The notes beneath the pieces were generated by a model, which was given only the letters and a program-made list of their open reading frames with translations, was not told the origin of the DNA and searched no databases. A program made the translations under genes and the position numbers. Below are positions 15,623-63,312 of a DNA stretch of 64,000 nt, one piece after another. Within the stretch, counting starts at the first letter, position 1, and every line of letters starts with the position of its first letter. The stretch lies in sequence record OR538032.1; one strand, written 5' to 3'.

Positions 15623-16585
15623 TTATTTGTCGAGCATGAATATTGTCACATCATCTTGAGATTCAAACGATGGTTTGTAACCGTATTGCGGTCCAAGACG
15701 TTTGAATAAACGCTTGTACAGACTGATTCGTTTCTCGTTTCCATCTTTGATTGATGTTGCAATTGTCTCACAGTTGTATTTCTTAGCAAAGTTCACTGTT
15801 TCATTGACTACCGTTGCAAATACTTGCATTGGGTTTTCAGAAGCAGTCAGATCATTAGTCCAGCCACTCTCACCGCGAACTTGAAAATGCACCTCAACAG
15901 CTTGTACAAACTCAGGCGGATTGAAATTGAAAATCTCATCATTACCACCCCAATCAATGCCTCGCGGTATTAGAATGACGCGATAAACTTGTTTACCTAT
16001 CTGAAATAGACCCTCGATTGGTTTCTTGTCACCCACGAGAACGTCGCCTTTCGGGTACATGACTTTCGCGGGCTTGTCAAGTGATTCCGTCAAATTAACC
16101 GAAGACAGCCACTCGCGCCATGTCTTTTTATTTCCGATTTTCGCAAACGGAATATCGTCATGGTCTAGCCACTGTGCCGAGCGGTCATACGACTGAGAAG
16201 TATCAAATCCACGGTAATCATCGCCAACCCATAGCCATTTATGATGCCAGATTTGATTGACTTGACGTGGCTTAGAAACAGCACCGTCTTTGTAAGTGAT
16301 CATCATACCCGCGGCTGGTTCCTGTACAGTGTCAAATTCAACTGAGTCATAGAACGCAACGCCACCTTTTTTATAGTCAATTCGGACAATGTTCGGTGTG
16401 AATTGCGGATTTGCTATTGATACTTGAGTACGAGCATCAGCAACCATTTGCTTGAACTCGTCAGGAACATAGTCAACGTGAACATATAATGAACCGCCAA
16501 TGTCTTTACCAACGCCCCATTTGCTGCGTTTTACTGCACTACCTTTTCGGGTTTTTAATGTAGCGCGTTCAAAAATTATGCTCAT
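15623..16585 (-). CDS. two-domain hypothetical protein, putatively capsid-packaged
   Basis: 320-aa ORF in the operon after TCTAAATA; internal LTE-SLDKP junction; C-domain resembles ORF 60736. Confidence 0.8.
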   Translation of the reverse strand: MSIIFERATLKTRKGSAVKRSKWGVGKDIGGSLYVHVDYVPDEFKQMVADARTQVSIANPQFTPNIVRIDYKKGGVAFYDSVEFDTVQEPAAGMMITYKDGAVSKPRQVNQIWHHKWLWVGDDYRGFDTSQSYDRSAQWLDHDDIPFAKIGNKKTWREWLSSVNLTESLDKPAKVMYPKGDVLVGDKKPIEGLFQIGKQVYRVILIPRGIDWGGNDEIFNFNPPEFVQAVEVHFQVRGESGWTNDLTASENPMQVFATVVNETVNFAKKYNCETIATSIKDGNEKRISLYKRLFKRLGPQYGYKPSFESQDDVTIFMLDK

Positions 16586-16587
16586 TA

Positions 16588-17181
16588 TTACCTCGTTGCT
16601 GCGTTTGTGATATTTCTGATCATACGCACTGCGAATTGAGTGTCGCCTGTCATGGCTGCTGACGCCGCCTTATCGACGTAAAACGTGCTATCTTCGATCA
16701 TGTTCAAGTGATGGTAGATTTCACGAAAATCATGGCGGTCGAACTCTTTAGTGGTGAAACGAAGCGCGCCTGCTTTCTTGTCATCGTCGTGAACACGTTT
16801 GTATTCATCAATGACTCGAATCATTTCACTAGCGTATTTCTTCATTTCCATGTTATCGAGCTTCAAACGTTTTGCTGCTTGAATTACCTCGTCACGAGGA
16901 CGCTCAAGTTCAATCGCATCTTTAAGAATGTTCAGGCTGTGAATGGTATTCACTGCTGCCTTTTCCATTTGTAATTTGTGATCTTCAAGCGTTCGATTAT
17001 GCTTTCTCAACTCACCAGTTGCGGTAGCACTTGCAATCAAGCCAGCAAAAACTCCCCAGAACCCGCCTTTACGCTGCAAGCGTTTCTTAACTTCGCCTTT
17101 CGAACCTGCTGTAATTGCTTGAAATTGAGCCCATTTGCCGCTTTTTCTTGCTTTATCCATTTCTGTTAAAAATTCAATCAT
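16588..17181 (-). CDS. hypothetical protein with CTS-like N-terminus
   Basis: MIEFLTE start; hydrophobic GGFWGVFAGLIASATATG; GGGG RBS. Confidence 0.8.
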   Translation of the reverse strand: MIEFLTEMDKARKSGKWAQFQAITAGSKGEVKKRLQRKGGFWGVFAGLIASATATGELRKHNRTLEDHKLQMEKAAVNTIHSLNILKDAIELERPRDEVIQAAKRLKLDNMEMKKYASEMIRVIDEYKRVHDDDKKAGALRFTTKEFDRHDFREIYHHLNMIEDSTFYVDKAASAAMTGDTQFAVRMIRNITNAATR

Positions 17182-17206
17182 AGTTTTAACCCCTTATTGT
17201 TTACTG

Positions 17207-17214
17207 TATTTAGA
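17207..17214 (-). promoter_or_regulatory. late promoter variant TCTAAATA
   Basis: TATTTAGA on + strand, just downstream of a terminator and 26 nt upstream of the ORF starting at 17181. Confidence 0.65.
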
Positions 17215-17222
17215 CGTAAACG

Positions 17223-17249
17223 AAAAAAGGGCGACCGAAGTCACCCTTT
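17223..17249 (-). terminator. intrinsic terminator
   Basis: minus strand AAAGGGTGAC-TTCG-GTCGCCCTTTTTT. Confidence 0.88.
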
Positions 17250-17263
17250 AACAGTTGGTTAAA

Positions 17264-17890
17264 TTAACCGTAGATTGCTTTGATGTTATCAAAGAACGAA
17301 GAAGATTTATTTACCTTCGCGATTACGTAGGTAGCATTCATCCGAACCATGTTCGATACGTTGATTTTTTCAAGCTCTTCTTTATCGAGATTTGCATCAG
17401 TGACAAGTTTTAGAATGTCGCGTGCATTGTCTCGCAATGCAATTGATGTCAGATAGCGAATTTGCTGCTTTGCTTCAAGTGATTTGAATGCATCAATCGC
17501 ATCTTGACCAGCAACTGCAACTGAAAGACCCAGCCCGCGATTAAGTGCGCGAGTCAAAAGCTTCTCCATGCCTTCGATTGGCTTGCGTGGCGTCGCTCGT
17601 TTTGGGATGTCGATAGCTAGACGACCTTTGTTTTTCAGCGAGTAAACGTGAACTTCACGAACGCCGTACTTCTCAAATCGTGTTACGATGATCTCATCAG
17701 AGTTCTGTACGTTATCTTGTACACGTCGTCGTAGAGTTTCGTTGTACTCGCCGCCATTTAGTGCATAGACAAGTTCAGCAACGGTTAGATCACGATGTGA
17801 AAGTAGCTCGATAATCGCAGGGCGAAAGTTTTTGCTGCTAACTTTGTCATTTGAAGCAAGTGCTTTGCGTACGATTTCAACGTTTTTCAT
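17264..17890 (-). CDS. hypothetical protein, possible N-terminal winged HTH
   Basis: IIELLSHRDLTVAELVYAL ... REVHVYSLK pattern; GAGAG RBS. Confidence 0.75.
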   Translation of the reverse strand: MKNVEIVRKALASNDKVSSKNFRPAIIELLSHRDLTVAELVYALNGGEYNETLRRRVQDNVQNSDEIIVTRFEKYGVREVHVYSLKNKGRLAIDIPKRATPRKPIEGMEKLLTRALNRGLGLSVAVAGQDAIDAFKSLEAKQQIRYLTSIALRDNARDILKLVTDANLDKEELEKINVSNMVRMNATYVIAKVNKSSSFFDNIKAIYG

Positions 17891-17906
17891 AATATATTTC
17901 TCTCAA

Positions 17907-18182
17907 TTAAATTTCTTTCTCAACGGGAACTTGAATTTCATCAAATTGCGTATCGTGGTATTGCTCATACGCTTCGTGAAAGCTATCAAGTTCATCGTCA
18001 ACTATAATCTGTTCGCCGGTCTCGAAAACATACATGATGCTATCGTATAAACCAGTGGCAGTATTGTACATTGGTTCAGTTGTGAATCTCACACCGCACG
18101 GCGTGAAAAGCTCAATTCTGACTTCAGGGACTGGGACTTGCTCTGCATTGTGTACTGCAAAGGCTTGTTCTAATCTAGTCAT
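17907..18182 (-). CDS. hypothetical protein (acidic)
   Basis: ATG at 18182 after GAGAG (track starts at 18215). Confidence 0.7.
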   Translation of the reverse strand: MTRLEQAFAVHNAEQVPVPEVRIELFTPCGVRFTTEPMYNTATGLYDSIMYVFETGEQIIVDDELDSFHEAYEQYHDTQFDEIQVPVEKEI

Positions 18183-18243
18183 AATGTGCTCTCTGTATTG
18201 TCTCAACGAAAACAAGTTTAGGTCAAGACAATACTAATGTCAA

Positions 18244-18732
18244 TTACTTTTTGCGCCATTTTGCAAGTTTTTCATCGTATTCACTGTGCTTCCACAAATC
18301 AAACACGATAGTACCGCTCTGGAACCACCACACAAGTGAGATTGTATCATTCAGCTTAGGATCTTTAGGGTTCTTTCCTAAGTAAAGCTCAGTACTCGGG
18401 TGCGAGTGGTAGATTGCTTTTTTGACAGCGAACTTATATCCGCCTTCTGGCATACCAATTTCTTTCGGTGGGTAGATATTACCCAGATACGCTACTTGAT
18501 ATACTGTGTTTTTGAACACAACACGAGCCGAGTCAATATTGAAAAGCAAGTTTTGATACTTAGCAGCATTCGGGGCAATCTTCCATTTATTCTTAGGCTT
18601 GGTTTCGAGTAGTTTATCAATCTCGGGTTCTGGTATCAATTTACCGAGATTGTGATTTCCCCATTCTTCCTCAAGAGAAAGACTAATATGAATGCCGTAA
18701 AGCGTGTTTTCATATTCGTTAAATCGAAGCAT
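18244..18732 (-). CDS. hypothetical protein with CTS-like N-terminus
   Basis: MLRFNEYE start; in the late operon downstream of inh2. Confidence 0.75.
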   Translation of the reverse strand: MLRFNEYENTLYGIHISLSLEEEWGNHNLGKLIPEPEIDKLLETKPKNKWKIAPNAAKYQNLLFNIDSARVVFKNTVYQVAYLGNIYPPKEIGMPEGGYKFAVKKAIYHSHPSTELYLGKNPKDPKLNDTISLVWWFQSGTIVFDLWKHSEYDEKLAKWRKK

Positions 18733-18736
18733 GTTG

Positions 18737-19255
18737 TTACCTCAGATAAGTGAAGCTATTTGAATTGCGTTCATGAACTAACAATTCACCGCGAAGCTTA
18801 ACCCAATGTTCAATTGTCTTTAGATCGTGCGAGTCTCGACGACCGATGTGCCAATCATGAATGATTTCAGCCGATAACGGTTGATATAATTCATCACCGC
18901 GACGATATGTAGGCATCCATTTAGGCTTGAATTCATCTTCAATATCAATTTCGACCTTAATCGCATCAACTGGATCGACTAGAACTACGTCAACACGTTC
19001 TAAATGCTCGTGAGAATCAACGTCAACGCATTCAGCGTCTTTAGCATCTGATTCATCGACTAAATCACAACGAGTCTCAGAATCAATTACAGCGCATTCT
19101 AGCGGTACTTCGGTTTGAGCTACGATTTCATGAGCGATAAGCTCTTCGATCATTTTGCTCTTTGTAAGGGATTTGTCAAGCTCGATGTCATAATGTTTCA
19201 ACGCGAATTCAGCGACCCCTCTCTTAGTCTGTTTCTTTAGATATTCAGTAATCAT
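18737..19255 (-). CDS. inh: inhibitor of prohead protease, copy 2
   Basis: AEFALKHYDIELDKSLTKSKMIEEL and LKTIEHWVKLRGELLVHERNSNSFTYLR; AAGGA RBS before ATG 19255; adjacent to uvsW as in T4. Confidence 0.8.
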   Translation of the reverse strand: MITEYLKKQTKRGVAEFALKHYDIELDKSLTKSKMIEELIAHEIVAQTEVPLECAVIDSETRCDLVDESDAKDAECVDVDSHEHLERVDVVLVDPVDAIKVEIDIEDEFKPKWMPTYRRGDELYQPLSAEIIHDWHIGRRDSHDLKTIEHWVKLRGELLVHERNSNSFTYLR

Positions 19256-19263
19256 ATTATTCC

Positions 19264-19470
19264 TTAGCACGTAATAGTGACCCATTCGTTTTGGTTCAAA
19301 TCAAAGAATGTCAGAGTATCGACACAACGTTCATTCTTCCTCATTTCTTCGCGATTCTTTTCAAGAACAGGCAAATAATGCTTGCACAATGTGCCGTGAT
19401 ATTGGCACCCGTCGCGTTCTAATTTAAGACATCCTTGCGTCATACAGGACATCATTTCTTCTCGTGTCAT
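19264..19470 (-). CDS. small Sm/WYL_2-like hypothetical protein
   Basis: GTL...P ... DTLTFFDLNQNEW pattern recalled from WYL_2 (DUF2693)-like phage proteins. Confidence 0.6.
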   Translation of the reverse strand: MTREEMMSCMTQGCLKLERDGCQYHGTLCKHYLPVLEKNREEMRKNERCVDTLTFFDLNQNEWVTITC

Positions 19471-19483
19471 GATTTTAGACCTC

Positions 19484-19491
19484 TATAAATA
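19484..19491 (+). promoter_or_regulatory. late promoter TATAAATA for uvsW
   Basis: exact consensus. Confidence 0.85.
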
Positions 19492-19501
19492 CAGTTATAC
19501 A

Positions 19502-19509
19502 TATTTAGA
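19502..19509 (-). promoter_or_regulatory. late promoter variant TCTAAATA for the 19470/inh2 operon
   Basis: TATTTAGA on + strand. Confidence 0.65.
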
Positions 19510-19533
19510 CAAAACTCGCATAGAGAGAAAAAC

Positions 19534-21057
19534 ATGACAGATATTAAAATTGAGTACTTCGATGAGAGTTATGCGAGAGTCGTAGCCGAGCCAAGCATTA
19601 CTCATGAAATGATTGATTACTTTTCATTTCTAACTGACGGGTACAAATTCAACCCTAAATTTAAAATGGGCATATGGGATGGCAAGATTCGACTAATGAC
19701 GTATCAAGGTCTATTGCCATACGGTCTAGTCGGTCAAGCTAAAGCGTTTGCATCAAACATGATGTACACGATTGAAACTGATCCACTACTTGATCCGATT
19801 GAGAAAATTTCTCGTGAAGATTTTGAAGCATGGGTTGCTTCTCTTGATATTTACGGTGGCAGCAATAAAATTAGCCCGTACTGGTATCAAATGGATTCAG
19901 TATTTCACGGTATTAACAATCAGCACATCCTTTTGAATCTACCAACATCGGCGGGTAAATCGCTGATTCAGTCACTTTTGACACGTTGGTTTTTAGAAAA
20001 TCACGAAGCTCAGAAAGTGTTGATTATCGTCCCAACGACTGCACTAGTTCAGCAAATGCGTGACGACTTTTTAGACTATCGCTTGTTTGAACACGGTGAC
20101 ATATATCAAATTCGAGGTGGCGTAGATAGAGACGCAATCGGCGACTGCCGTATTGTTGTTTCAACATGGCAATCGGCTGTTAAGCAAGATAAAGCATGGT
20201 TCGATCAGTTCGGTATGCTTCTAGTCGATGAATGTCACTTAGCAACGGGTAAGTCGCTTGACGGCATCATCAAAAAAATGACCAGTTGTGAATACAAAAT
20301 AGGTCTTACTGGTTCACTTAGAGACGGTAAAGCTAATATTCTACAGTACGTGGGTTCATTTGGTGATATTTTCAGACCTGTATCGACTGCACAGCTAATG
20401 GAAGAAGGGCAAGTAACTGATCTGAAGATCAATTGCTTGATGCTTGAATATCCTCAGCCACTACGTGATGAAATGAAAGGCAGTTCATATCAAGAAGAAA
20501 TGAAATTCATTCTTGAGAACAAACAGCGAAATCGTTACCTGATTAAGCTTGCTCATCATCTGAGTGCTAAGAAAGGCGAGAACACGCTATTACTGTTCAA
20601 GAACATTAAACATGGTAAATTGCTCTACGAAGCATTGAAGAAAGTCTACGATCCTGAGAAAGTGTTCTACGTATCAGGTGAAACTAAGACTGACGACCGT
20701 ACGCATGTTAAGAAAATTGCAGAAGATATTGACGGGGCAGTTATTGTCGCATCATACGGTGTATTCTCGACTGGTATCAGTATCAAGAAACTACACAACG
20801 TAATTTTCGCACACCCGACAAAGAGTAAGATCATCAACTTACAGTCTATTGGTCGTATTCTACGTAAGCACGGTTCGAAAGTTACTGCGAAGCTGTTTGA
20901 CATTATCGACAACTTGGCGATCAAGCCGAAACGTAAGAATGCTAAGAAGCCGTATACACATGTCAATTATACTATGAAGCATGGGATGCAGCGTATTGAG
21001 CTTTACAACCAAGAAGAGTTCAAGTACGCAGTCAAAAAAGTTGACCTTGCTGCATAA
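19534..21057 (+). CDS. uvsW: UvsW DNA helicase
   Basis: LPTSAGKS, LVDECH, GLTGS, LQSIGRILR SF2 motifs. Confidence 0.97.
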   Translation: MTDIKIEYFDESYARVVAEPSITHEMIDYFSFLTDGYKFNPKFKMGIWDGKIRLMTYQGLLPYGLVGQAKAFASNMMYTIETDPLLDPIEKISREDFEAWVASLDIYGGSNKISPYWYQMDSVFHGINNQHILLNLPTSAGKSLIQSLLTRWFLENHEAQKVLIIVPTTALVQQMRDDFLDYRLFEHGDIYQIRGGVDRDAIGDCRIVVSTWQSAVKQDKAWFDQFGMLLVDECHLATGKSLDGIIKKMTSCEYKIGLTGSLRDGKANILQYVGSFGDIFRPVSTAQLMEEGQVTDLKINCLMLEYPQPLRDEMKGSSYQEEMKFILENKQRNRYLIKLAHHLSAKKGENTLLLFKNIKHGKLLYEALKKVYDPEKVFYVSGETKTDDRTHVKKIAEDIDGAVIVASYGVFSTGISIKKLHNVIFAHPTKSKIINLQSIGRILRKHGSKVTAKLFDIIDNLAIKPKRKNAKKPYTHVNYTMKHGMQRIELYNQEEFKYAVKKVDLAA

Positions 21058-21066
21058 TAGATACGA

Positions 21067-21093
21067 AAAAGGGAGCAATTTGCTCCCTTTTTT
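21067..21093. terminator. bidirectional terminator
   Basis: AAAAGGGAGCA-ATT-TGCTCCCTTTTTT; identical to 61619-61645. Confidence 0.9.
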
Positions 21094-21094
21094 A

Positions 21095-21205
21095 TTAGTC
21101 AGAAAAGATTGCCGAGAGAATCGCACCGATTAACTCGAACAGAAATTCAAATGGCGCCCAGAGCCAGTCGAAAAACCCACGATCTCGTTTACGATCTCTG
21201 CTCAT
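21095..21205 (-). CDS. 36-aa putative membrane peptide (not in ORF track)
   Basis: hand translation MSRDRKRDRGFFDWLWAPFEFLFELIGAILSAIFSD; AAGG RBS; fills the gap between uvsY.-2 and the terminator. Confidence 0.65.
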   Translation of the reverse strand: MSRDRKRDRGFFDWLWAPFEFLFELIGAILSAIFSD

Positions 21206-21209
21206 ACCT

Positions 21210-21380
21210 TTACCCGTTTAGAAGTTGTGTTTCGACAAGTTGCTGATCGCCGCCAGATTCAGAAATAGCCATTTCTGCTAGATGTTGCTGACATTGACCT
21301 GCGTGAACTGTGCCTTGTGGCGTATCAATCGTGACATCGCCTTCTTTGATAGGTTGCTTGCATACAACACAATGTGCCAT
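21210..21380 (-). CDS. uvsY.-2: UvsY.-2-like small protein
   Basis: MAHCVVCKQPI ... GTVHAGQC ... LVETQLL matches T4 uvsY.-2; start moved from 21455. Confidence 0.85.
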   Translation of the reverse strand: MAHCVVCKQPIKEGDVTIDTPQGTVHAGQCQQHLAEMAISESGGDQQLVETQLLNG

Positions 21381-21553
21381 TAGTCTAACCCCGATTTTGT
21401 AAGTGATTGGTAGAGTGCGAAGTCGTTGACTTGCAATGAGCCATTCAATTCCCACCCGTCGTTTAGTAGCTCTTGCACCTCTTCTTCGAATTCATCTGCG
21501 AACTCGTGACGCCGAGATACTACTTTGTATTTATGTCTAAGCCAGTTCTGCAT
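21380..21553 (-). CDS. small hypothetical protein, 57 aa (not in ORF track)
   Basis: hand translation MQNWLRHKYKVVSRRHEFADEFEEEVQELLNDGWELNGSLQV...; coupled to both neighbours; DUF1737-like GW.L.G pattern. Confidence 0.75.
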   Translation of the reverse strand: MQNWLRHKYKVVSRRHEFADEFEEEVQELLNDGWELNGSLQVNDFALYQSLTKSGLD

Positions 21554-21554
21554 A

Positions 21555-21968
21555 CTACATACCTATTGCTAGTTTGAATAGAGCAGACGCTTTACCACCA
21601 TCGAAAACTTTACCTGTAGCCTTTAGAGCGCCCATTAGTTTGCCCATATCACGCATAGAATCTGCACCAGTTTCTAGCACGAAGTTAGAAACAAACGTGT
21701 CTAGCTCTGAATCAGATATTTTTGCTGGTAGTAAAGACTCAAGAACAGCGTTTTCCGCGTTCAGGATGTCAACATGGTCGCCTTGTGCATGTTCAAGTGC
21801 CAGATTGTTGTTGTCGATTGCGCTTGAGATCACTTTGATGCAAGACTCATCATCGTGTTTTTGACGACGGTCAAGTTCACCCATAATGACACCCAATACG
21901 GACGCAACTGCGTTGTTGCGGTCTTTACGAGCTTGTAGGCGTGTTGATTTGATTGTTTCGATGATCAT
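21555..21968 (-). CDS. YqeY/GatB-domain protein
   Basis: AENAVLESLLP, SMRDMGKLMGALK, DGGKAS. Confidence 0.85.
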   Translation of the reverse strand: MIIETIKSTRLQARKDRNNAVASVLGVIMGELDRRQKHDDESCIKVISSAIDNNNLALEHAQGDHVDILNAENAVLESLLPAKISDSELDTFVSNFVLETGADSMRDMGKLMGALKATGKVFDGGKASALFKLAIGM

Positions 21969-22378
21969 ACTATACCACTCTCAATTTTTCTATTATCAAT
22001 AATGTGTTTAATTGTGAAGCCCATTTGGCTAATGCCTTTCAAAGCTTCTTCGATGAAAGATAACACATCTTTCATGTGTTGAAAACGTGCAATCGCTAAT
22101 TGAAGAGCTTCATCACCAGCGAGTGCGTATTTCATTTCGCTTTTCTCAACGATAAAGTCACAAACTTCATCGTCATGCTTGCCGCTATAAAAGAGCCAGC
22201 GGTCTTTTCTCACTGCTTCCATTTTCATTTCAGCTTTAATAAGAAGCTGTCTTGCATCGGCTCTATATGCAAGCCACTTTGCATGAAGTACTGGGATTCG
22301 AATGGCTGCGGTTTCTAGTGCAGTCGTATCGATCTTAACGTCTTCATGGTATTCTGCTTTTAAATCTTGTAACTTCAT
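21965..22378 (-). CDS. uvsY: recombination mediator UvsY
   Basis: DVKIDTTALE..AIRIPVLHAKWL, LKGISQMGFTIKHIIDNRKIESG; GAGGG RBS before ATG 22378. Confidence 0.92.
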   Translation of the reverse strand: MKLQDLKAEYHEDVKIDTTALETAAIRIPVLHAKWLAYRADARQLLIKAEMKMEAVRKDRWLFYSGKHDDEVCDFIVEKSEMKYALAGDEALQLAIARFQHMKDVLSFIEEALKGISQMGFTIKHIIDNRKIESGIV

Positions 22379-22398
22379 ATAATACCCTCGCTTCATCA

Positions 22399-22427: not shown

Positions 22428-22436
22428 CACGAATCT

Positions 22437-22544: not shown

Positions 22545-22545
22545 C

Positions 22546-40581: not shown

Positions 40582-40589
40582 TCTAAATA
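40582..40589 (+). promoter_or_regulatory. late promoter variant TCTAAATA
   Basis: in the short intergenic gap before ORF 40623. Confidence 0.6.
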
Positions 40590-40622
40590 CTGGTATGGTA
40601 TTAAGGATGGTGTTCATGCACT

Positions 40623-41468: not shown

Positions 41469-41471
41469 CTA

Positions 41472-55252: not shown

Positions 55253-55467
55253 TGAGCAATTTTCTTCGAATTCTAGAAGACATGTGTCGCGACTTTCGCG
55301 GCGAACTGAACGAAGCAGCGACTGCCGAGGTTGATTACTACCTCATTCAGATATATGTCGCGTTGCTTTCACTAGGCTTCGGCGTGCAGATTGCGATTTT
55401 CGTTGCATTTTATGCAATTTTTTACATCCCAATGAGTATGATCGGTCGAGTGGTAGGTATTAAATAA
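55252..55467 (+). CDS. small membrane protein
   Basis: GAGG RBS; hydrophobic C-half. Confidence 0.68.
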   Translation: MSNFLRILEDMCRDFRGELNEAATAEVDYYLIQIYVALLSLGFGVQIAIFVAFYAIFYIPMSMIGRVVGIK

Positions 55468-55484
55468 GAGACGGAGGTGGCACT

Positions 55485-55751
55485 ATGCTAAAGTCTTTTA
55501 TTGAAATATCACTGAACGAAATGACATACCAAGAGTTGCGTGATCTCACGATCAATGAGATTCACGCGCTCGTTAAGAAGCTGAAGAAACAGCTTCCGAA
55601 GAAGTACAAAGACATTATCGACGAACTAGAACCAGACATGTATGAAGATCTGATTGCAGAAATCGCATATGATGGTGGGTTAAAAGGTAAAAAATTTGTC
55701 AACTTAAAAATCCCGAAGCGAATCTTAGATAGGTACGCTGACTACTTCTGA
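55485..55751 (+). CDS. hypothetical protein with CTS-like N-terminus
   Basis: MLKSFIEISLNE; GGAGG RBS; ATTAAATA at 55459-55466. Confidence 0.78.
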   Translation: MLKSFIEISLNEMTYQELRDLTINEIHALVKKLKKQLPKKYKDIIDELEPDMYEDLIAEIAYDGGLKGKKFVNLKIPKRILDRYADYF

Positions 55752-55761
55752 GAGAAATATT

Positions 55762-56154
55762 ATGTTTGATGCTGCTAGTATGCGGGCCCGTTATAAGCCG
55801 AAACAACCGTCCGACCTTCAGATGCAGAAAATCGAAGAATTTCAAGATTTTTTGTATAACACACTGCAATCCATTGATAAAATAGCTGATACAGAACTTG
55901 AGATAAAAGTCGGTATAAAAGCTGAATTTTATGAATCAGCGGTTGTGGAATTCGAGAAATTAGGTTACAATATCAGAGCAGTGAAGAAGACATTCGATAT
56001 TGAAAATCGAATCAATCCTCACGAGCCGCCAGAAATCGGTTACTTAAAGTACGAAACTCACAGTTTAGCACTTGCTTATGTGAATCGTATGTTGAGAGAA
56101 CGCGGTTCTGAACACATGATATTGACGATAATTGATTGGAGACGTAAGGCATGA
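55762..56154 (+). CDS. hypothetical protein (paralog family A, divergent)
   Basis: FDAASMRAR ... KLGY ... IIDW. Confidence 0.72.
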   Translation: MFDAASMRARYKPKQPSDLQMQKIEEFQDFLYNTLQSIDKIADTELEIKVGIKAEFYESAVVEFEKLGYNIRAVKKTFDIENRINPHEPPEIGYLKYETHSLALAYVNRMLRERGSEHMILTIIDWRRKA

Positions 56155-56414
56155 TTATGAAAGCCGAAGAAGCACGAGCCCGCAGCATCAAAGTAATGGA
56201 AGAGAAATTTCCAGTTGACGATCTAGAACATCTAGATGAGCGCATTGCACAAGCAACCGACGAAATGCGTTTTGGTATCAATATTCGAATTCGCGACGAA
56301 ATGCCGGGTATCAATAGCCACAGTCTGAAACGACTATTGATTGAATATCTGCGTTTGCACAATTACAACGCATTTTATGTTGATGACATCTTGGAGATTC
56401 GATGGCAAATTTAA
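56151..56414 (+). CDS. hypothetical protein (paralog family A)
   Basis: MKAEEARAR ... HNYNAF ... LEIRW. Confidence 0.72.
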   Translation: MIMKAEEARARSIKVMEEKFPVDDLEHLDERIAQATDEMRFGINIRIRDEMPGINSHSLKRLLIEYLRLHNYNAFYVDDILEIRWQI

Positions 56415-57130
56415 AGGTTTATTACTGTAGTGATATTCATAACGATTATCACGATGAAAACGCGCTAGAACGCATTACAGGCGACAAAGACGCTGTATTG
56501 GTAGTAGCGGGTGACATTAACAGCAAAGGGCGAACAGTGCGCGACTTAGAAGCTGTCGCAGACCGTTGGCGTGCTGTTATCGCAGTGCCGGGAAATCACG
56601 ATTGGTGGGGTCTTGCGATTCACGAGCGACACAAATTTGAAACTTCGGTTGACAATGTTCACGTATTGCTTGAAGATACAGTTCAGATTGACGACGTGAC
56701 ATTCTGCGGGACTACGCTGTGGCACGAAGTCAATGACTGGTTTGAAGGTCAACGCTGGAAAGAAAACATGAACGACCGTCGTAAGATTCGCGGCCCTCAA
56801 TGGCGACCTTTGTATGGTGAAGATGTTCACGCGCTTCATTGCCAATCAGTAAAATTTATCGAGAAATGTCGCGAGATTGAAGGTAAGAAAGTGTTAATAA
56901 CACATCACGCCCCGTCTCTGAAGAGCATTTCATCTTACTATGCGTACTCAAGTACGAATAGTTTTTATTGCACTGACCTTGAGCATTTGCTTGAAGGGTT
57001 CAACTTTGCAATTCACGGTCATGTTCATCAAGAATTTGACTATCACGTAAACGACTGTAATGTACTGTGTAACCCACGTGCATACGGCTCAGAAAACCCG
57101 GATTACGGGCTTAGGATTTTCGACATATGA
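56402..57130 (+). CDS. calcineurin-like metallophosphoesterase
   Basis: SDIHND, VAGDI, PGNHDW, ITHHAP, IHGHVH, CNPRAY. Confidence 0.93.
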   Translation: MANLKVYYCSDIHNDYHDENALERITGDKDAVLVVAGDINSKGRTVRDLEAVADRWRAVIAVPGNHDWWGLAIHERHKFETSVDNVHVLLEDTVQIDDVTFCGTTLWHEVNDWFEGQRWKENMNDRRKIRGPQWRPLYGEDVHALHCQSVKFIEKCREIEGKKVLITHHAPSLKSISSYYAYSSTNSFYCTDLEHLLEGFNFAIHGHVHQEFDYHVNDCNVLCNPRAYGSENPDYGLRIFDI

Positions 57131-57315
57131 CTTTTTTTCTTGGTTACTTACTAATCGGTGCTTTGCTTACTATTGCTATCAACCCTCAATTGAGTAAGCA
57201 CTTTAAGCAAATGGGTGGCGAAAGCATCATTCTTATGAATGTAGCATCGGTAGTACTATCGCCATTATTCGTAGTTATCCTGCTGATTAAAAAGCTGTTT
57301 GGTAAACTAAAATAA
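57127..57315 (+). CDS. small membrane protein
   Basis: hydrophobic N- and C-terminal segments, basic tail. Confidence 0.68.
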   Translation: MTFFLGYLLIGALLTIAINPQLSKHFKQMGGESIILMNVASVVLSPLFVVILLIKKLFGKLK

Positions 57316-57360
57316 CGTATTAAATACGTGCGTCTAATAATAACGTAAAAGGTAATACAA

Positions 57361-57606
57361 ATGACGCACGATTTGAATATGCTTCTTGAGCAGTACAACC
57401 TCGCGAATTACGATTGCGACGGTGATTTTGAAGACTATTACTGGTCGGTGGCAGAATGGATTGGTCAGACTGTCTTCAGTCACGGTACAATTCGTAAACA
57501 CGATATTCTTGAGCTGCTTTGCGATTTACTTGAAATCTCTGAAGACCAAATCAACGTAGATGACGTTGACGATTTTCTAACCGAAGTTTATGAGGTGATT
57601 GAATAA
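57361..57606 (+). CDS. highly acidic small protein
   Basis: 21 D/E versus 2 K/R in 81 aa; AAGG RBS. Confidence 0.78.
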   Translation: MTHDLNMLLEQYNLANYDCDGDFEDYYWSVAEWIGQTVFSHGTIRKHDILELLCDLLEISEDQINVDDVDDFLTEVYEVIE

Positions 57607-57666
57607 TGAAGAAAATTCATCGTAAGGAGCTGTTTCACTGAGTAATTTAACTCGGAGAAACAGCAA

Positions 57667-58179
57667 ATGACTGAAGTCAAAAAATACAAAGGCGTAAAAG
57701 AAAACGAACTACCAATCTACAATTCTCGTGAAATGCGCTACAGATACATTTACAAGGTAGATGAAGGTTCATGGGTACCTGAATGGGCTAGAACATACGT
57801 TCGTTACGAACGTTTCTGGACGATGCGTCTAGAAGTCGGGTTTTACATTGCCGACGAAGCAAGTCGCAAACTAGATCTGATTCGCAAAGCCGAACGTCTT
57901 GCATCATACAAAGGTAACTACGTTTTCCGTTACACGCCAGTGCCACATACAGGTGGCTACAAGAACTGGGTATCAACCATTCGAGGGAAAGGGTTGATGT
58001 CTGAGATCCATCACAATAAGATTTGCAAAGACGAAATTGAGCCAGAATACGGTAATGTCGTACGCAAAAAGCGTGATAAACTAGTGCGCTGTCTTAGAGA
58101 TTGGGATGGTCTAGAGTCGTATCATTCACAGCAACGCGGTTGGAAACGTTCTAAGAAGCGTAAGCAGTGGATGAAATAA
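57667..58179 (+). CDS. hypothetical basic protein
   Basis: GGAG RBS; ends RGWKRSKKRKQWMK. Confidence 0.78.
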   Translation: MTEVKKYKGVKENELPIYNSREMRYRYIYKVDEGSWVPEWARTYVRYERFWTMRLEVGFYIADEASRKLDLIRKAERLASYKGNYVFRYTPVPHTGGYKNWVSTIRGKGLMSEIHHNKICKDEIEPEYGNVVRKKRDKLVRCLRDWDGLESYHSQQRGWKRSKKRKQWMK

Positions 58180-58184
58180 TGAAG

Positions 58185-58220
58185 AAAAGGGTTGCAATTC
58201 GCAGCCCTTTTTAGTATCAT
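58185..58220 (+). promoter_or_regulatory. terminator hairpin overlapping sigma70 promoter
   Basis: AAAAGGGTTGC-AATTC-GCAGCCCTTTTT contains -35 TTGCAA; -10 TATCAT after N17. Confidence 0.75.
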
Positions 58221-58248
58221 ACAGTAGATTCACATTGAGAGATATATT

Positions 58249-58845
58249 ATGACTGATAAGAAACAAAAACCAACTCTAATTTTTGACGTGGATGGTGTTC
58301 TAATTGATTGGGCAAGCCAGCTACCGTTATTCTGCAAACGCTGCGGAATCGACCCTGTTCGTGCGCTGAAGCATTTCACAGCGAAAGAACACGTTGACGT
58401 ACGCGACCTATTCGGCGTTGAACAACGCTCAATTGCATTCGATTTGCTTGAGAAATACAATCTCGAACATGGCAAATACATGACTGCTTTCCCAGATGCT
58501 GTCGAGCACGTACACAAAATCGCCAAAGAGTACAATCTAGTCGCATTGACTAAATTCGGTGACACTACAGATCACTGGCTAGTTCGCAAGTTTAATCTTG
58601 AGACGTTCTTCCCTGGGTGTTTCAGTGAGTTGATCACAATTCGCGGTGATGAGAGCAAAGTCGGGTATGTTGCTGCATTACAAGCAGATCATAATGTAGT
58701 TGGTTTTATCGACGACCAGCTTGAGAATATTCAAGCAATCGGTCGAGCAACGAATCTAAAAACGATTCATCTAAACCGCTACGATGAACGCGCTGATGTT
58801 CATCACATGTCGAAGCTATTAGACTTTCTTCACGAAAAAGTTTAA
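58249..58845 (+). CDS. 30.2: HAD-family phosphatase (T4 30.2-like)
   Basis: LIFDVDGVLIDW, VALT, FIDDQ..NI; upstream of gene 30. Confidence 0.8.
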   Translation: MTDKKQKPTLIFDVDGVLIDWASQLPLFCKRCGIDPVRALKHFTAKEHVDVRDLFGVEQRSIAFDLLEKYNLEHGKYMTAFPDAVEHVHKIAKEYNLVALTKFGDTTDHWLVRKFNLETFFPGCFSELITIRGDESKVGYVAALQADHNVVGFIDDQLENIQAIGRATNLKTIHLNRYDERADVHHMSKLLDFLHEKV

Positions 58846-58869
58846 TACAGCAATAACTCATCGTATAAT
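58841..58869 (+). promoter_or_regulatory. sigma70-like promoter
   Basis: TTTAAT-N17-TATAAT. Confidence 0.55.
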
Positions 58870-58892
58870 AAAGCTCCGTTTGGGGCTTTTTT
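58870..58892 (+). terminator. intrinsic terminator
   Basis: AAAGCTCC-GTTT-GGGGCTTTTTT. Confidence 0.75.
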
Positions 58893-58902
58893 GGATTCGA
58901 AG

Positions 58903-59202
58903 ATGATTAAACGAGCTTATATTATTCACGCAGATAGCGCACTTGCAAAACGCGCAGTCGCGCTTGACAAACGAGAAGCAAAAGGTAAACCGTTCTTCAC
59001 TAGTAAAGAAGAGTGGGAAGCTGAACTGCAAACGGATTGGCAAGAATGGAACAAGGAAGCATGTGATTACATCGTTCACATATACGGCGATCATATCGCT
59101 GGGAAAACATTCTTAGTTACAATTCAAGACGGCAACGTATATTTTGAGGAAAATGATGTTTGCTATACTAATGAAAAGCAACCAAGAAGTGGCGATTATT
59201 GA
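58903..59202 (+). CDS. hypothetical protein
   Basis: ATG 58903 in the frame of track ORF 58891; start uncertain. Confidence 0.65.
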   Translation: MIKRAYIIHADSALAKRAVALDKREAKGKPFFTSKEEWEAELQTDWQEWNKEACDYIVHIYGDHIAGKTFLVTIQDGNVYFEENDVCYTNEKQPRSGDY

Positions 59203-59374
59203 TCTCGGTGATGTTACAATGCCTGCATTGTACATGAAAGAAGATGACGCGCTTCGAGTGTTGTACAAAAATGATTTACACGACCGTTGCTTTGTTGCAC
59301 GTGTTCGTCCTGAAATTTATATAGAGGGTCCAGATGATTCTACCGATTCTAAACAAACTAGCAGCAACGACTAA
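59171..59374 (+). CDS. hypothetical protein
   Basis: short ORF overlapping the ligase start; start uncertain. Confidence 0.5.
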   Translation: MKSNQEVAIIDLGDVTMPALYMKEDDALRVLYKNDLHDRCFVARVRPEIYIEGPDDSTDSKQTSSND

Positions 59375-60677
59375 ACGTACTGAAAAAGAGAAGATTTTGA
59401 AGTCTGAAGCAAGCAACGAATTGCTGAAGCGAGTCTTCCAACTTGCGTACACGCCAACATATCAGTACAACATGAAAAAACTGCCTGAAGTTTGTCATGA
59501 AACTGCTGCTCTACACGTCGATTGCTATCTTCCGCTTGAAGAAGCACTTGAGCATGTGTTTGATGCGCTAGTGACTAAACAAACTCGCGGTCAAGCTGCT
59601 CAGACTGTTGTCTCTAACATCTTGAAGCAAGTAACTGCTGATGATGCTGAGGTGATTCGTCGTGTGATTCTACGCGATTTGCGCACTGGTTGTACTGGCA
59701 GCACTGCTAACAAAGTGTGGAAGAAACTGATTCCTGAGCAGCCACAAATGCTTGCAAGTGCGCATAACGAAAAGCTAATCGACGCGATTCTGACTAAAAT
59801 CGCATACGCGGAACTAAAAGCAGACGGCGCACGCTGTTTCGCTCACGTTGATCTTGACGGTAATATTACGCTGACATCGAGAAACGGCAAACCGTATCTT
59901 GGTTTACAGAAAGTCGAGAAAGCATTGACTGCAATGGGCGTGAATGGCTTTGTAATTGACGGTGAGCTTGTCTATGCACCGAATGGTCTCCACGCAGTTG
60001 AAGACCGTTCAACTGGTAACGGCATCGTTAACAAAGCAAGCAAAGGCACGATTTCTCTAAAAGAGCAAGCTGACATCATCTTCCAAGTATGGGACATCAT
60101 CCCAGAAGATGTGTACTTCGGCAAGTCAAACGAACTCAACATGGCGTACAGCAAGCGTAAGCGTGTTTTAGCAGATGTTGCGCTTAAAGCAAAGGGTGTC
60201 ATTGAGCCTATTCCGTGGCAAACAGTTTCGACTAAAGAACAAGCGTCTGAAATCTACAATCAGTACGTTGCTCAGGGTCTAGAAGGAATCATCTTGAAAG
60301 ATCCAGATGCGCTTTGGGAAAACAAGCGAAGCAAATCACTTGTGAAGTACAAAGAAGTGCATGACGGTGATCTTGAGATCATTGAAGTCATCGAAGGCGA
60401 CAAGAAGAATAAAGGCAAGATGGGTGCTCTTCTATTGCGTTCAGCTTGCGGTAAGTTGATTACTAAAGTTGGTAGCGGGTTCACGGACAAAGATCGCGAA
60501 GAAATTTGGGCGCGTCGTGATGAAGTTATCGGCATGATTGTAGAAATCAACTACAACGCGATTACTCGCGCAAGAAACAAAGACACGTGGTCATGCTTCT
60601 TGCCGATTTTCGTGCAATTCCGTGACGACAAAGACGTTGCGAACACGCTTGAAGAAATGAGCGGGTTCAAGGGTTAA
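59334..60677 (+). CDS. gp30: ATP-dependent DNA ligase
   Basis: QMLAS, ELKADGAR (adenylation Lys), IDGEL, LEGIILK, WENKRSKSLVKYK, VGSGF, FRDDK. Confidence 0.97.
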   Translation: MILPILNKLAATTKRTEKEKILKSEASNELLKRVFQLAYTPTYQYNMKKLPEVCHETAALHVDCYLPLEEALEHVFDALVTKQTRGQAAQTVVSNILKQVTADDAEVIRRVILRDLRTGCTGSTANKVWKKLIPEQPQMLASAHNEKLIDAILTKIAYAELKADGARCFAHVDLDGNITLTSRNGKPYLGLQKVEKALTAMGVNGFVIDGELVYAPNGLHAVEDRSTGNGIVNKASKGTISLKEQADIIFQVWDIIPEDVYFGKSNELNMAYSKRKRVLADVALKAKGVIEPIPWQTVSTKEQASEIYNQYVAQGLEGIILKDPDALWENKRSKSLVKYKEVHDGDLEIIEVIEGDKKNKGKMGALLLRSACGKLITKVGSGFTDKDREEIWARRDEVIGMIVEINYNAITRARNKDTWSCFLPIFVQFRDDKDVANTLEEMSGFKG

Positions 60678-60678
60678 T

Positions 60679-60702
60679 AAAAGGGGCGAAAGCCCCTTTT
60701 TT
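60679..60702 (+). terminator. terminator after ligase
   Basis: AAAAGGGGC-GAAA-GCCCCTTTTTT. Confidence 0.92.
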
Positions 60703-60704
60703 CG

Positions 60705-60712
60705 TATAAATA
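60705..60712 (+). promoter_or_regulatory. late promoter TATAAATA
   Basis: exact consensus immediately after the terminator. Confidence 0.88.
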
Positions 60713-60735
60713 CTTTCATTTAGAGAGAACCGAAA

Positions 60736-61617
60736 ATGATTATATTCGAAGATATTAATCCGCTGTGTGAAGCATTTGATCGCCCAGCACCATACAAATG
60801 GGATTCTATGTACAACGAAGCCCGATTTACGGTTGGGAACGTGCAGTATGTTGCGTTTATCAAAGATAATGACACAGCAAGAGGTTTAAGTCTGTATGTG
60901 GCATTTCAGCGTCGTGATAACGCAACTGGTCAATGGACTCACTCACTTGCTAAAGGCTCGCCGAAAGACGCAATGACGGTATTGAGCACAATACTGGCAG
61001 CAACATTTGACAAGGCATCAAAAGTTGAACCGAATGAAATTACATTCAGTGCATTTCGTGACGCAGAGGACGAAGACGCAAATAAGCGTTTTAGACTGTA
61101 CAAGCGTATGGCTGAGCGATACGCAAAGCAAATGAATTACACAGTTCATATCACTGGTAATAGCTTCACACTAACAAACAACAATCCACCTAAGATCAGA
61201 CGACTGCACAATGACGGCATTCACAAAGAAGATGAACTTACATACGTAAATTTCCCTGCTTGTAATGCATTCACATGGGCGAAGATTTTCTGGCTCGACA
61301 ATGACGGCGATTACATCAAACTTACATTGCCTCACGGTCGTATTCACATTGTGAGAAAATCAAGTGACGTGATTGAAATCGAAGCAATTACACCGAAAGG
61401 TCGTTTTGACAATCTAGATTCAGATGAGATTTGGATGTCGATGTTATCTGATATTAAAGTGAAAGCTAGAGGCGGAAGCACATTTACTATATCAGAGAAA
61501 GGCGCGATTTTAGATGCCGGTGATATGATTTTGTGTGAGCAAGGTACGTTTTATTACCTAAGTTCTGAAGATGATTTCAAAGAAATCTGGGGATATGAAA
61601 TCGACTCGATTGAATAA
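60736..61617 (+). CDS. late hypothetical protein with CTS-like N-terminus
   Basis: MIIFEDINPLCE-AFDRP; own late promoter and terminator. Confidence 0.82.
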   Translation: MIIFEDINPLCEAFDRPAPYKWDSMYNEARFTVGNVQYVAFIKDNDTARGLSLYVAFQRRDNATGQWTHSLAKGSPKDAMTVLSTILAATFDKASKVEPNEITFSAFRDAEDEDANKRFRLYKRMAERYAKQMNYTVHITGNSFTLTNNNPPKIRRLHNDGIHKEDELTYVNFPACNAFTWAKIFWLDNDGDYIKLTLPHGRIHIVRKSSDVIEIEAITPKGRFDNLDSDEIWMSMLSDIKVKARGGSTFTISEKGAILDAGDMILCEQGTFYYLSSEDDFKEIWGYEIDSIE

Positions 61618-61618
61618 G

Positions 61619-61645
61619 AAAAGGGAGCAATTTGCTCCCTTTTTT
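61619..61645. terminator. bidirectional terminator
   Basis: AAAAGGGAGCA-ATT-TGCTCCCTTTTTT between convergent genes; identical to 21067-21093. Confidence 0.9.
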
Positions 61646-61647
61646 GA

Positions 61648-63312
61648 TCATGGTGTCAGAGGACTACGTTCTTTCACTTTGCGGTCTTCGTCGATTTCAA
61701 TATCAACAACTCGCATGAAGTTAGCAACTTGCGCTAACTCACTCAAACGTTCCTGCTTTTTGTAAGCAGACAGGACGCCGCTTTTCGATGAATTGTCTTT
61801 GGCTTTCAAGCGAATCACCGCATCGAATTCTGATAATTGAACAACGTCGGCTTCGAACATCGTATTACGGTTGATGATGAAATCACAATCGCCTTTCTTC
61901 CCGTATTTGCCTGGTGCTAAAACAGGTAACCCGTCAGACTCAATAACAAACACAACGTTCAGTTTTCTGTCAGATTCGAGCATATCACGCATAATTGATT
62001 TGCTATTCTTGCTCGTCGCGTTGACGATTGTTTTCGCGCTAGATTCAACAAAGTCACATACAACAAATGGATCAGTTGATGATGTGATGAACGCAGTTGA
62101 AACGAACGCGCCAGATTCAAGAATCGAGCCGACACGTTTGCTAGACATTTCACAACCACGATATAGCGTAACGCCATTCGACACCTTACCAGCTTCATAG
62201 AAAGCTCGGTCTAAGCGAGAAATTGCATCCCTAACCTTTTCATCACCTGCGCCGTGAACTAACTCTTCATTGACCTTCCACGAATAACGAGACGCAGAAT
62301 AGCGAGAAATTGCAGCTTGAGTAAGAGAAGATAGACCAGCATATGAATCTTCTTGCATCATTTGCAACGATAATTGGTCATATTGCTTCTCAAACGCACG
62401 TGAACGGGCTTTTAACAGTGCGCCGCATACTTCGCTAATCAAGTTAGCTTTAACGCCCTCAGAGCGTGCAGCGTCGATATATGGGTTCATTCGTTCTGCT
62501 ACATCAACAAGGTCGATGTTCATATCAACAATTGCTTGAGCAGCGTTAGCCAATTTCGTTAGACCGTCAGTTGCTGCCGCTTCTGTTAATTGCTGCTTGA
62601 TAGATGCACTGACCCGCGCTTCCATTTGTGGCATTTGTAGAATTTGATTTGGGACGCGAACGGCAGGGTTTTCTTCTACCCATTGACCTAGAACATCATC
62701 TTCATAATCATCATAGCCAGCATCGGCAGTCACGATGATTGTTTTCTTGCTTGAAATGTCAGTCTCTTTCGCCATTTTAGCAGCAAGAATATTGATTGTT
62801 TCTTCGGTTGCTTCGACGAGTTTATCAGCGTCATAGCCGGGTTTCGTGATCACGAAGAAGCTGAAATCTTCAGCCATTTCATTATCACCGACGTTCATGA
62901 TTTTAGTCGTTTCGCAGCCGTATCGAAGTTTCTTGAACAGCGTTTTAACACGCATGTCGAACATTTTACCGCTACCGATCTTTTGAATACGCATAGACAC
63001 AGCGTTGGCACGTGTTTTCAACATGAAACTTTGGATCAATTTAACCAATGTTTCTTGAAACTTTTCTTGGTCTCCCATGTCACGGATGGTTAATCCGCCT
63101 TTTTTGCCTCGCATTGCTGAGACAGTACAGAACCACGAACGTTTTCCACGATTTCCGATGTCTGATTTTGTTTTAGTTGTGAACGAAACTACAACGTCAC
63201 GAGCTTCGCCTTTCATATCGATCACAAAGAATTTGTTTTCTTTGGTCGAGCGAGCCGGATAGTAGTCGTACGTTGCGCTCATGTTTTCAGTTAATTGTTG
63301 AAATCCAATCAT
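61648..63312 (-). CDS. alt: Alt-like ADP-ribosyltransferase-fold protein
   Basis: N-terminus parallels T4 Alt; ART motifs TLYRG, FITSS, VLAPG...DCDFIINRN; downstream of gene 30 as in T4. Confidence 0.75.
   Translation of the reverse strand: MIGFQQLTENMSATYDYYPARSTKENKFFVIDMKGEARDVVVSFTTKTKSDIGNRGKRSWFCTVSAMRGKKGGLTIRDMGDQEKFQETLVKLIQSFMLKTRANAVSMRIQKIGSGKMFDMRVKTLFKKLRYGCETTKIMNVGDNEMAEDFSFFVITKPGYDADKLVEATEETINILAAKMAKETDISSKKTIIVTADAGYDDYEDDVLGQWVEENPAVRVPNQILQMPQMEARVSASIKQQLTEAAATDGLTKLANAAQAIVDMNIDLVDVAERMNPYIDAARSEGVKANLISEVCGALLKARSRAFEKQYDQLSLQMMQEDSYAGLSSLTQAAISRYSASRYSWKVNEELVHGAGDEKVRDAISRLDRAFYEAGKVSNGVTLYRGCEMSSKRVGSILESGAFVSTAFITSSTDPFVVCDFVESSAKTIVNATSKNSKSIMRDMLESDRKLNVVFVIESDGLPVLAPGKYGKKGDCDFIINRNTMFEADVVQLSEFDAVIRLKAKDNSSKSGVLSAYKKQERLSELAQVANFMRVVDIEIDEDRKVKERSPLTP

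Follow-up and report, generated by a model that had tools for sequence, protein, structure and literature searches.

Leader-bearing late proteins of a KVP40-type Vibrio phage as a probable, largely unstudied set of head-packaged proteins

The proteins carried in the head of phage T4 include the restriction inhibitor IPI and Alt, which reprograms host RNA polymerase, and they act before phage gene expression. The T4 prohead protease gp21 cuts after L/I-X-E, and the propeptides lost from virion proteins range from 7 residues in Alt to 65; Alt itself is packaged and shortened by an N-terminal propeptide, and in IPIII ten N-terminal residues are enough for targeting, which needs positions 4 and 7, whereas processing needs positions 8 and 10 (PMC9026906). 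The T4 leaders read MKTYQEFIAE/A in ipII and ipIII and MKTFKEF...TITE/A in ipI (NC_000866; the slash marks the cut). Here, we analyzed a 64,000-nucleotide (nt) stretch of sequence record OR538032.1 (the window), which over bases 15000-22000 and 54000-64000 shows 100% identity to Vibrio phage PG216 and 99.3-100% to KVP40, a T4-related Schizotequatrovirus. KVP40-type phages are noted for their broad host range and are candidates for aquaculture biocontrol. An initial annotation, made from the sequence alone, had flagged six open reading frames (ORFs) of the window, named here by their start positions (17181, 16585, 18732, 55485, 60736 and 63312, the last being alt), as a dispersed family of late genes with leaders of the T4 type and products possibly injected with the DNA. 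We propose, as the likely reading, that these candidates are late proteins built into the KVP40-type prohead via a short N-terminal propeptide that works like the T4 capsid-targeting sequence. The head of the phage probably contains a set of packaged proteins that is for the most part unstudied, of which Alt is a conserved, known member and 17181, 16585 and 60736 are new members; 18732 is probably a further one, while 55485 is the weakest of the six and its membership is doubtful.

The six N termini are exactly as the initial annotation wrote them (Table 1). Leaders end in LTE (17181 and alt), IFE (16585), IFE and LCE (60736) or LNE (55485), all of the form (L/I)-x-Glu. In 16585 and 55485, residue 5 is a phenylalanine; the other four candidates have it as residue 4. 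Of the six, 18732 alone has another aromatic residue at position 7, a feature seen outside the window in KVP40.0097 and KVP40.0066. The start M-[I/L]-x-F, a motif defined post hoc, is seen five times against 0.5-0.7 expected (P ~3e-4 to 9e-4). We compared the syntenic regions of the relatives nt-1, K567/K566, phi-Grn1, F86, 1.081.O, D479 and VS2, and found that the leaders MIEFLTE, MIIFE, MIGFQxLxE and MLKSFIE are kept among phages of 45-65% identity, beside variable flanks, whereas control N termini in the same loci (0369, 0373, 0377, 0047 and Alc) vary freely. This conservation in orthologues is the support that is independent of the motif counts. The resemblance to T4 capsid-targeting and gp21-cleavage sequences, as originally claimed, is supported.

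The individual proteins display the same pattern in different forms. The MIEFLTE of 17181 (codons 17161-17181) is unchanged across six phages, D479 having MIEFITE, with orthologue identity of 0.95 over residues 2-7, 0.43 over the next 13 residues and 0.62 overall. In the D479 orthologue of 16585, the leader is replaced by MIEFIAE (compare T4 ...QEFIAE). Orthologues of 60736 keep MIIF and E-A-F invariant at 44-55% overall identity, and the insert between them always ends in L-x-E; three orthologues lack it and read MIIFEAF directly. The leader consensus of 18732 is M-[LFI]-x-F-[NSA]-E-[YH]-E-N, with aromatics at 4 and 7 and a glutamate at 6, spaced as in T4 MKTYQEF, and that of 55485 is similar to the leader of the late gene KVP40.0290, MKNLKSFMEELQSLNE. 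As for ORF 61648-63312, it matches PHROG 802 over residues 279-553, in its catalytic C-terminal region (E 7e-89), its relatives carry PF03496, and it is predicted to be an Alt-like ADP-ribosyltransferase; its leader, MIG[FY]Q[QE]L[TN]E, and its N-domain are conserved in relatives. The phi-Grn1 (L015:9459-9560) and F86 (L016:9590-9638) records annotate a wrong Alt start, at an internal Met in phi-Grn1 and at an upstream Met in F86, and both phages have the conserved start MIGFQ... and its CATAAATA intact.

The claim that each candidate lies behind its own late promoter held in part. Among the six, the exact TATAAATA is found only upstream of 60736, while alt and 17181 have variants, CATAAATA and TCTAAATA, and 16585 and 18732 have no promoter of their own. 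Variants accepted as late promoters differ from TATAAATA by one mismatch, and TCTAAATA and CATAAATA are credible because they also precede gp19, gp34, gp48 and a long-tail-fibre gene. The hairpin and TCTAAATA at 17207-17246 are both kept in nt-1, K567, phi-Grn1, F86 and 1.081.O, with CATAAATA in D479; the gene starting at 16585 abuts the 17181 gene that they precede. The 18732 gene is third behind the TCTAAATA at 19502-19509, and a candidate promoter directly upstream of it, TTCAAATA, was discarded since it is not conserved in nt-1. For 55485, the only promoter-like sequence is ATTAAATA, which has two mismatches and overlaps the stop codon of the upstream gene. Late transcription is thus predicted for 60736, alt, the 17181 and 16585 pair and the unit running from 19470 to 18732, and not convincingly for 55485. 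At 19484-19509, late promoters stand back to back, with TATAAATA at 19484-19491 on the plus strand for uvsW and, 11 nt off, the minus-strand TCTAAATA for the minus-strand operon.

Published mass spectrometry of particles of the Schizotequatrovirus 6E35.1a lists 94 proteins from two replicates (PMC12028318, Table S4), and the PHROG numbers in Table S8 of that study agree with the assignments made here. The 6E35-type orthologues bear the same leaders as the window proteins, and the proposed virion presence is upheld for five of the six, whose orthologues are clearly in the particles at 9 counts or more in both replicates (for the 18732 type and the others, as tabulated); the 55485 type is marginal. 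Detection follows the flagged genes closely. In the eight-gene minus-strand cluster, three genes are listed, exactly those flagged (1/56), and among 96 window-equivalent genes, 30 of them listed, the hypergeometric probability that all six flagged genes fall among the listed is 6e-4, or 2e-3 without Alt. The particle list contains neither the Inh paralogues nor the 0369, 0373, 0374 and 0377 types. Among unflagged neighbours, loci 0015, 0017, 0020, 0021, 0023 and 0024 are missing from it. As a scale, gp21 reached 17/28 and gp22 20/14, and the counts of the candidates are similar to those of gp21, gp22 and gp68.

We also read the rest of KVP40, scanning for leaders and late-promoter variants, and compared the outcome with the 6E35.1a proteome. 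The set is larger than the initial six: the leader scan adds KVP40.0066, 0097, 0103, 0115/0116 and 0290 (Table 1), and the predictions made outside the window are mostly detected in the particles. The leader of KVP40.0066 is the closest match in the genome to the T4 targeting sequence MKTYQEFIAE (T4 from NC_000866). A third phrog_6387 gene of 6E35.1a (_0242) has counts of 15/23. In all, at least 10 virion-associated proteins with leaders can be named, each with predicted cleavage sites.

The phage itself encodes the machinery that such leaders would require. Starting at gp16, the window extends across the head genes (gp20, gp67, gp68, gp21, gp22 and gp23) to a minus-strand cluster adjoining inh and uvsW, and continues with tail-fibre genes 34 and 35, a long replication and early block and, at its end, ligase, alt and alc. 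Both the gp21 protease and the gp22/gp67/gp68 core lie at 6579-8756, and L/I-x-E is present in the N termini of the window's own gp21, gp22, gp67 and gp68. By analogy with T4, gp21 is the presumed enzyme that would process the candidates, and the gp67/gp68/gp21/gp22 core the scaffold that targeting leaders would bind. Because the candidates fit the T4 scheme, with protease and core encoded alongside, we infer that they are loaded into the prohead via their leaders and trimmed by gp21. Affinity of the leader for the scaffolding core (gp22, gp67 and gp68) would come from its aromatic residue at position 4 or 5, in some cases with another at 7, the following (I/L/F)-x-Glu would be cut by the gp21 encoded in the same window, and the mature protein would be left inside the filled head, from which it would be released into the host. 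The predicted cleavage sites are E7 in 17181, E6 and E167 in 16585 (which would be cut twice, at its leader and at an internal junction), E5 or E12 in 60736 and E9 in alt. The leaders also suggest tags with which foreign proteins could be loaded into the heads of Vibrio phages, a practice already in use for T4.

The candidates had been described as unrelated, which does not hold for two of them, since one domain is common to 15623-16585, in its C-terminal half, and 60736-61617, in its N-terminal half. Residues ~168-320 of 16585 are homologous to ~14-150 of 60736 (PHROG cross-hits; hhalign probability 98.9%, E 3e-17), and hhalign pairs NLTE/SLDKPAKVMY inside 16585 with PLCE/AFDRPAPYKW of 60736, nt-1 reading LTE/AFDKPSKIHW. 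The match of 60736 to the Pfam family DUF6934 (PF22028) is weak (17.1 bits, gathering cut-off 27). A profile of the shared domain retrieves 3191 representative proteins at E <=0.001, of 140-2200 amino acids (aa) and mostly with 2-5 tandem copies, and all ten relatives tested are Pfam DUF6934 above threshold (E 1e-7 to 1e-48); by sequence comparison, the domain common to 16585 and 60736 is probably a divergent DUF6934. In the best 148 of the 3191 retrieved proteins, which contain 230 domain starts, x-x-E precedes 220 of the starts, with L/I/V/M at P3 in 84% and [A/L/S]-[F/L]-[D/N] following, and 156 of the starts after x-x-E are internal. Among the leaders of N-terminal copies are MKTYSQFINE, MKTFQEFFTE and MRAVEFITE, the first of them in a protein encoded on a clearly T4-like contig, adjoining a gene that starts MLSFRRFIEE. 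Because such a site precedes the domain both N-terminally (60736) and internally (16585), 16585 is probably cut twice. A similarity by eye between the Alt N-domain and the shared domain was discarded, as hhalign gave a probability <0.3% against KVP40 Alt and T4 Alt; the sole hint of such a relationship comes from Foldseek matches to BFVD models of Alt-like proteins.

It is possible, and we propose it tentatively, that DUF6934 is a very large and so far unrecognised head-internal protein family of the T4 superfamily and other large myophages, made of ~150-residue units that each follow a prohead-protease site, (L/I/V)-x-E/(A/L/S)-F-D. The units would occur singly, fused to other domains or as 2-5 tandem copies, and a long “beads-on-a-string” precursor would be loaded into the prohead by one T4-type leader (e.g., MKTYSQFINE) and then cleaved into units by a gp21-type protease. 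If this is true, 60736, 16585, KVP40.0115 and KVP40.0116 are the first DUF6934 members with virion evidence, and DUF6934 may mark head-packaged cargo in thousands of uncultured phages. The N-domain of 16585 (~8-160), which contains an invariant block QIWHHKWLWV.DDY and matches no Pfam family, is found in metagenomes as stand-alone proteins of 176-180 aa or joined to other C termini (332 and 542 aa), each copy having an N-terminal extension with [I/L/F]-x-E.

Several observations weigh against prohead targeting and processing of the candidates. Cleavage after the glutamates is predicted from sequence, and the L-x-E-A-F-D string may be a structural part of DUF6934 and not a cleavage site. [I/L]-x-E occurs within the first 13 residues of 23 of the 89 window ORFs (26%), including DsbA, gp33 and gp59, compared with 12% in internal windows, and we discarded this loose motif as a classifier, given its presence in non-virion proteins. 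The leader of 18732 offers FNE or EYE only, so that P3 is Phe and not Ile/Leu, and its N terminus is not better conserved than the rest of the protein (0.56 vs. 0.78). ORF 55485 has ATTAAATA in place of a credible late promoter, and its orthologue is at noise level in the particles. KVP40.0065, a neighbour of 0066 with a good leader (MLGNFDSFLSE), is not listed in the 6E35.1a proteome. That proteome belongs to a relative at 45-65% identity, not to PG216, and was obtained from polyethylene glycol (PEG)-precipitated particles, a crude preparation in which gp32, dUTPase, thymidylate synthase, GTP cyclohydrolase (13/7) and spanins, with 1-19 counts, are evident contaminants; because of this, counts of 9-34 are suggestive of a head-internal location and not proof of it. 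Finally, Pfam, PADLOC and a PDB fold search gave no functional assignment for the candidates. The PDB search found no match at E <=0.001 for the 60736 and 16585 models, their weak resemblances to the RNase E DNase-I subdomain and to GNAT-like folds not being significant, and no candidate matches the internal-protein families (IPI/IPII/IPIII) in PHROG or Pfam.

Rather unlikely, in our assessment, is that the candidates are packaged and processed without being injected effectors, as prohead-core, scaffold-like or other structural head components, an explanation that would apply especially to the coiled-coil-rich 17181 and the DUF6934 proteins. The T4 core proteins gp22, gp67 and gp68 bear N-terminal sites of this kind and are for the most part broken down and expelled (PMC9026906), and the similarity of the candidate counts to those of gp21, gp22 and gp68, the genus-wide conservation of the genes and the failure of the searches to find an enzymatic or anti-defence domain in 17181, 16585, 18732 and 60736 are in line with such a role. 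Alt, however, is a known injected enzyme, KVP40.0290 shows a weak PARP-type match, and the authors of the 6E35.1a study marked the 16585 orthologue “Defense?” (PMC12028318). In addition, BFVD models of Alt-like ADP-ribosyltransferases (Foldseek E 7e-5 to 3e-3, the matched regions not being known) and of proteins with zeta-toxin or deaminase domains contain the fold seen in the 60736 domain. By analogy with Alt, the PARP-like relative and these effector-fused proteins, the candidates may be injected and act as effectors.

We regard as improbable that (L/I/V)-x-E-[A/L/S]-[F/L]-D is simply the first structural element of the DUF6934 fold, in which case the tandem proteins would not be polyproteins and 60736 and 16585 would be packaged otherwise than by protease-linked leaders. 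Although F-D-x-P-Y after the glutamate is as conserved as the residues before it, AlphaFold2 models place the motif in low-confidence, unstructured sequence just before the first strand: the predicted local distance difference test (pLDDT) score is <50 at residues 1-13 of 60736 (mean of the model, 84.9), and in 16585 it is <50 at residues 1-6 and falls to 63 over 161-170. The domain is also preceded by either one or two L-x-E copies, with two tandem sites at the junction of the 16585-type protein in VS1 and in the metagenomic relative P0022, and natural proteins end exactly at the glutamate, the 16585 orthologues of 1.081.O and D479 stopping right after it; N-terminal copies, moreover, have T4-like leaders. 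That the leaders are chance or compositional N-terminal features, and their detection a carry-over of abundant late proteins, is very unlikely, since the frequency of the loose motif, the cytoplasmic enzymes listed from the PEG preparation and the post hoc definition of the tighter motif, which would favor it, are set against leaders that stay invariant across divergent phages beside variable sequence, a leader swapped in D479, a motif kept at the internal domain junction of 16585 and at 156 internal junctions in relatives, selective detection in the eight-gene cluster and the success of predictions outside the window.

Table 1. Candidate proteins, late promoters and prohead genes of the window, with further leader-bearing proteins of KVP40 and spectral counts (two replicates) in 6E35.1a particles
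Feature	Coordinates	Strand	Leader or motif	KVP40 orthologue, length	6E35.1a counts	Remarks
Prohead core genes gp67, gp68, gp21, gp22	6579..8756	+	gp68 MKFISE; gp22 MQIKEQLLE			TATAAATA at 7877 and 8781
gp21 prohead protease	7240..7881	+	MELQLLIE			Annotation of identical PG216 record
ORF 16585	15623-16585	-	MSIIFE	KVP40.0371, 320 aa	VP6E351A_0018, 9/14	Leader; N-domain ~8-160; junction L165-T166-E167 (codon 16085-16087); DUF6934-like C-domain 168-320
ORF 17181	16588-17181	-	MIEFLTE	KVP40.0372, 197 aa	VP6E351A_0019, 21/34	
Late promoter of 17181	17207-17214	-	TCTAAATA			After terminator hairpin with T-run, ~17223-17246; serve two-gene unit 17181 to 15623
ORF 18732	18244-18732	-	MLRFNEYE	KVP40.0375, 162 aa	VP6E351A_0022, 17/14	
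Late promoter	19502-19509	-	TCTAAATA			Serves genes at 19470, 19255 (Inh-like) and 18732; conserved in relatives
ORF 55485	55485-55751	+	MLKSFIEISLNE	KVP40.0048, 88 aa	VP6E351A_0082, 3/0	Conserved M[LH]KSFIE; variable 2-6 residues ending in Glu; conserved body starting MTYQELRDLTINE
Late promoter of 60736	60705-60712	+	TATAAATA			Immediately after terminator ~60683-60703 that follows ligase gene; conserved in nt-1, K566, phi-Grn1, F86
ORF 60736	60736-61617	+	MIIFEDINPLCE	KVP40.0058, 293 aa	VP6E351A_0094, 16/61	Invariant MIIF; optional 7-8 residue insert; invariant E12-A13-F14; DUF6934-like domain ~14-150; second domain
alt (63312)	61648-63312	-	MIGFQQLTE	KVP40.0059, 554 aa	VP6E351A_0095, 122/233	Alt
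Late promoter of alt	63346-63353	-	CATAAATA			33 nt upstream of alt; conserved in nt-1 and K566
KVP40.0066	L017:4288-4935 (KVP40 39187-39834)		MKQFCNFLAE		31/79	Just past window end
KVP40.0097			MKLFTEF		58/109	Compare T4 IPI MKTFKEF
KVP40.0103			MIIFEN		18/25	Opposite strand among early genes; CCTAAATA
KVP40.0115 and 0116			MKFSEYQ...		37/51	Two more paralogues of shared domain
KVP40.0290			MKNLKSFMEELQSLNE		18/4	Late gene; weak PARP hit

Other features of the window were recorded alongside. The 484-aa ORF 11948-13402 (+), after gp23, has a weak fibritin-C match, and no other protein of unknown function is as abundant in 6E35.1a particles as its orthologue (414/637); given this abundance, a role in capsid decoration or as a collar fibre is probable. 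Two paralogues of Inh, the prohead-protease inhibitor, lie at 13439-13930 (+) and 18737-19255 (-; PHROG 8608). T4 Inh is a head protein; neither orthologue of the paralogues is listed in the 6E35.1a particle proteome. A late island interrupts the replication block at 40582-42772 (+), with TCTAAATA at 40582, a 281-aa ORF, a UvsW.1-domain protein (41472-42296) and a 158-aa ORF (42296-42772) named capsid vertex or gp23-like in some records; orthologues of the last two are in 6E35.1a particles (7/19 and 11/24), though they have no leaders. A ClpP-like protease gene (32811-33530, +; Pfam CLP_protease, E 9e-13) stands among the replication genes, its orthologue reaching 2/7 in particles. Among the early genes, the 66-aa ORF 47024-47224 (+) starts MKSKGFTLIELIV, a type IV prepilin-like N-terminal methylation motif (Pfam N_methyl, E 3e-9), which is unusual in phage.

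Compared with described systems, the candidates stand closest to the T4 internal proteins, whose short leaders likewise end in (I/L)-x-Glu; the aromatic residues of the T4 leaders, at positions 4 and 7, recur in part. Late expression, targeting to the prohead core and removal of the leader by gp21 are known for the T4 proteins; for the candidates, targeting and removal would follow the same course. Near copies of the T4 leader are MKQFCNFLAE in KVP40.0066 and MIEFIAE in D479, whereas most window leaders are shorter and of other types (MIIFE, MIEFLTE). The mature candidates show no sequence homology to IPI-III, are larger (88-554 aa) and not obviously basic, and their genes are dispersed and conserved genus-wide instead of being polymorphic and gathered in one hyperplastic locus. 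ORF 61648-63312 resembles T4 Alt in adjoining the ligase gene, in its late-type promoter, in a leader ending L-T-E (T4 MELITE/L) and in the abundance of its orthologue in particles; it differs in its length, against 682 aa in T4, and in its N-terminal 180 residues, which have no detectable similarity to T4 Alt or DUF6934.

Polymorphic internal-protein genes bearing capsid-targeting sequences are known from T-even phages (Repoila et al. 1994; Comeau and Krisch 2005, as cited in PMC4122927 and PMC9026906). There, as proposed here, a conserved leader lets the phage load varied cargo into its head, and in those citing accounts the genes are described for close T4 relatives; the literature searched holds nothing comparable for Schizotequatrovirus. 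The inner-body and ejection proteins of phiKZ and SPN3US, many of which are cut after Glu at a short motif by gp21-like proteases, with redundant propeptide sites (PMC9026906), belong to another phage lineage and other protein families, and no inner body is known for KVP40. MuF-anchored polymorphic toxins and polyvalent proteins (PMC5512222) are also head-packaged and deliver variable effector domains with the DNA, whereas the candidates have no MuF domain and targeting here would use a cleavable leader instead of a structural anchor domain. DUF6934 (PF22028), which the relatives match well above and 60736 below the Pfam threshold, is a family with no assigned function, and its link to packaged proteins appears new within the literature searched. 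Taken together, the candidates are probably new members of a system already described in T4, that of capsid targeting and prohead protease, and its Schizotequatrovirus members are previously found in the literature only as hypothetical proteins.

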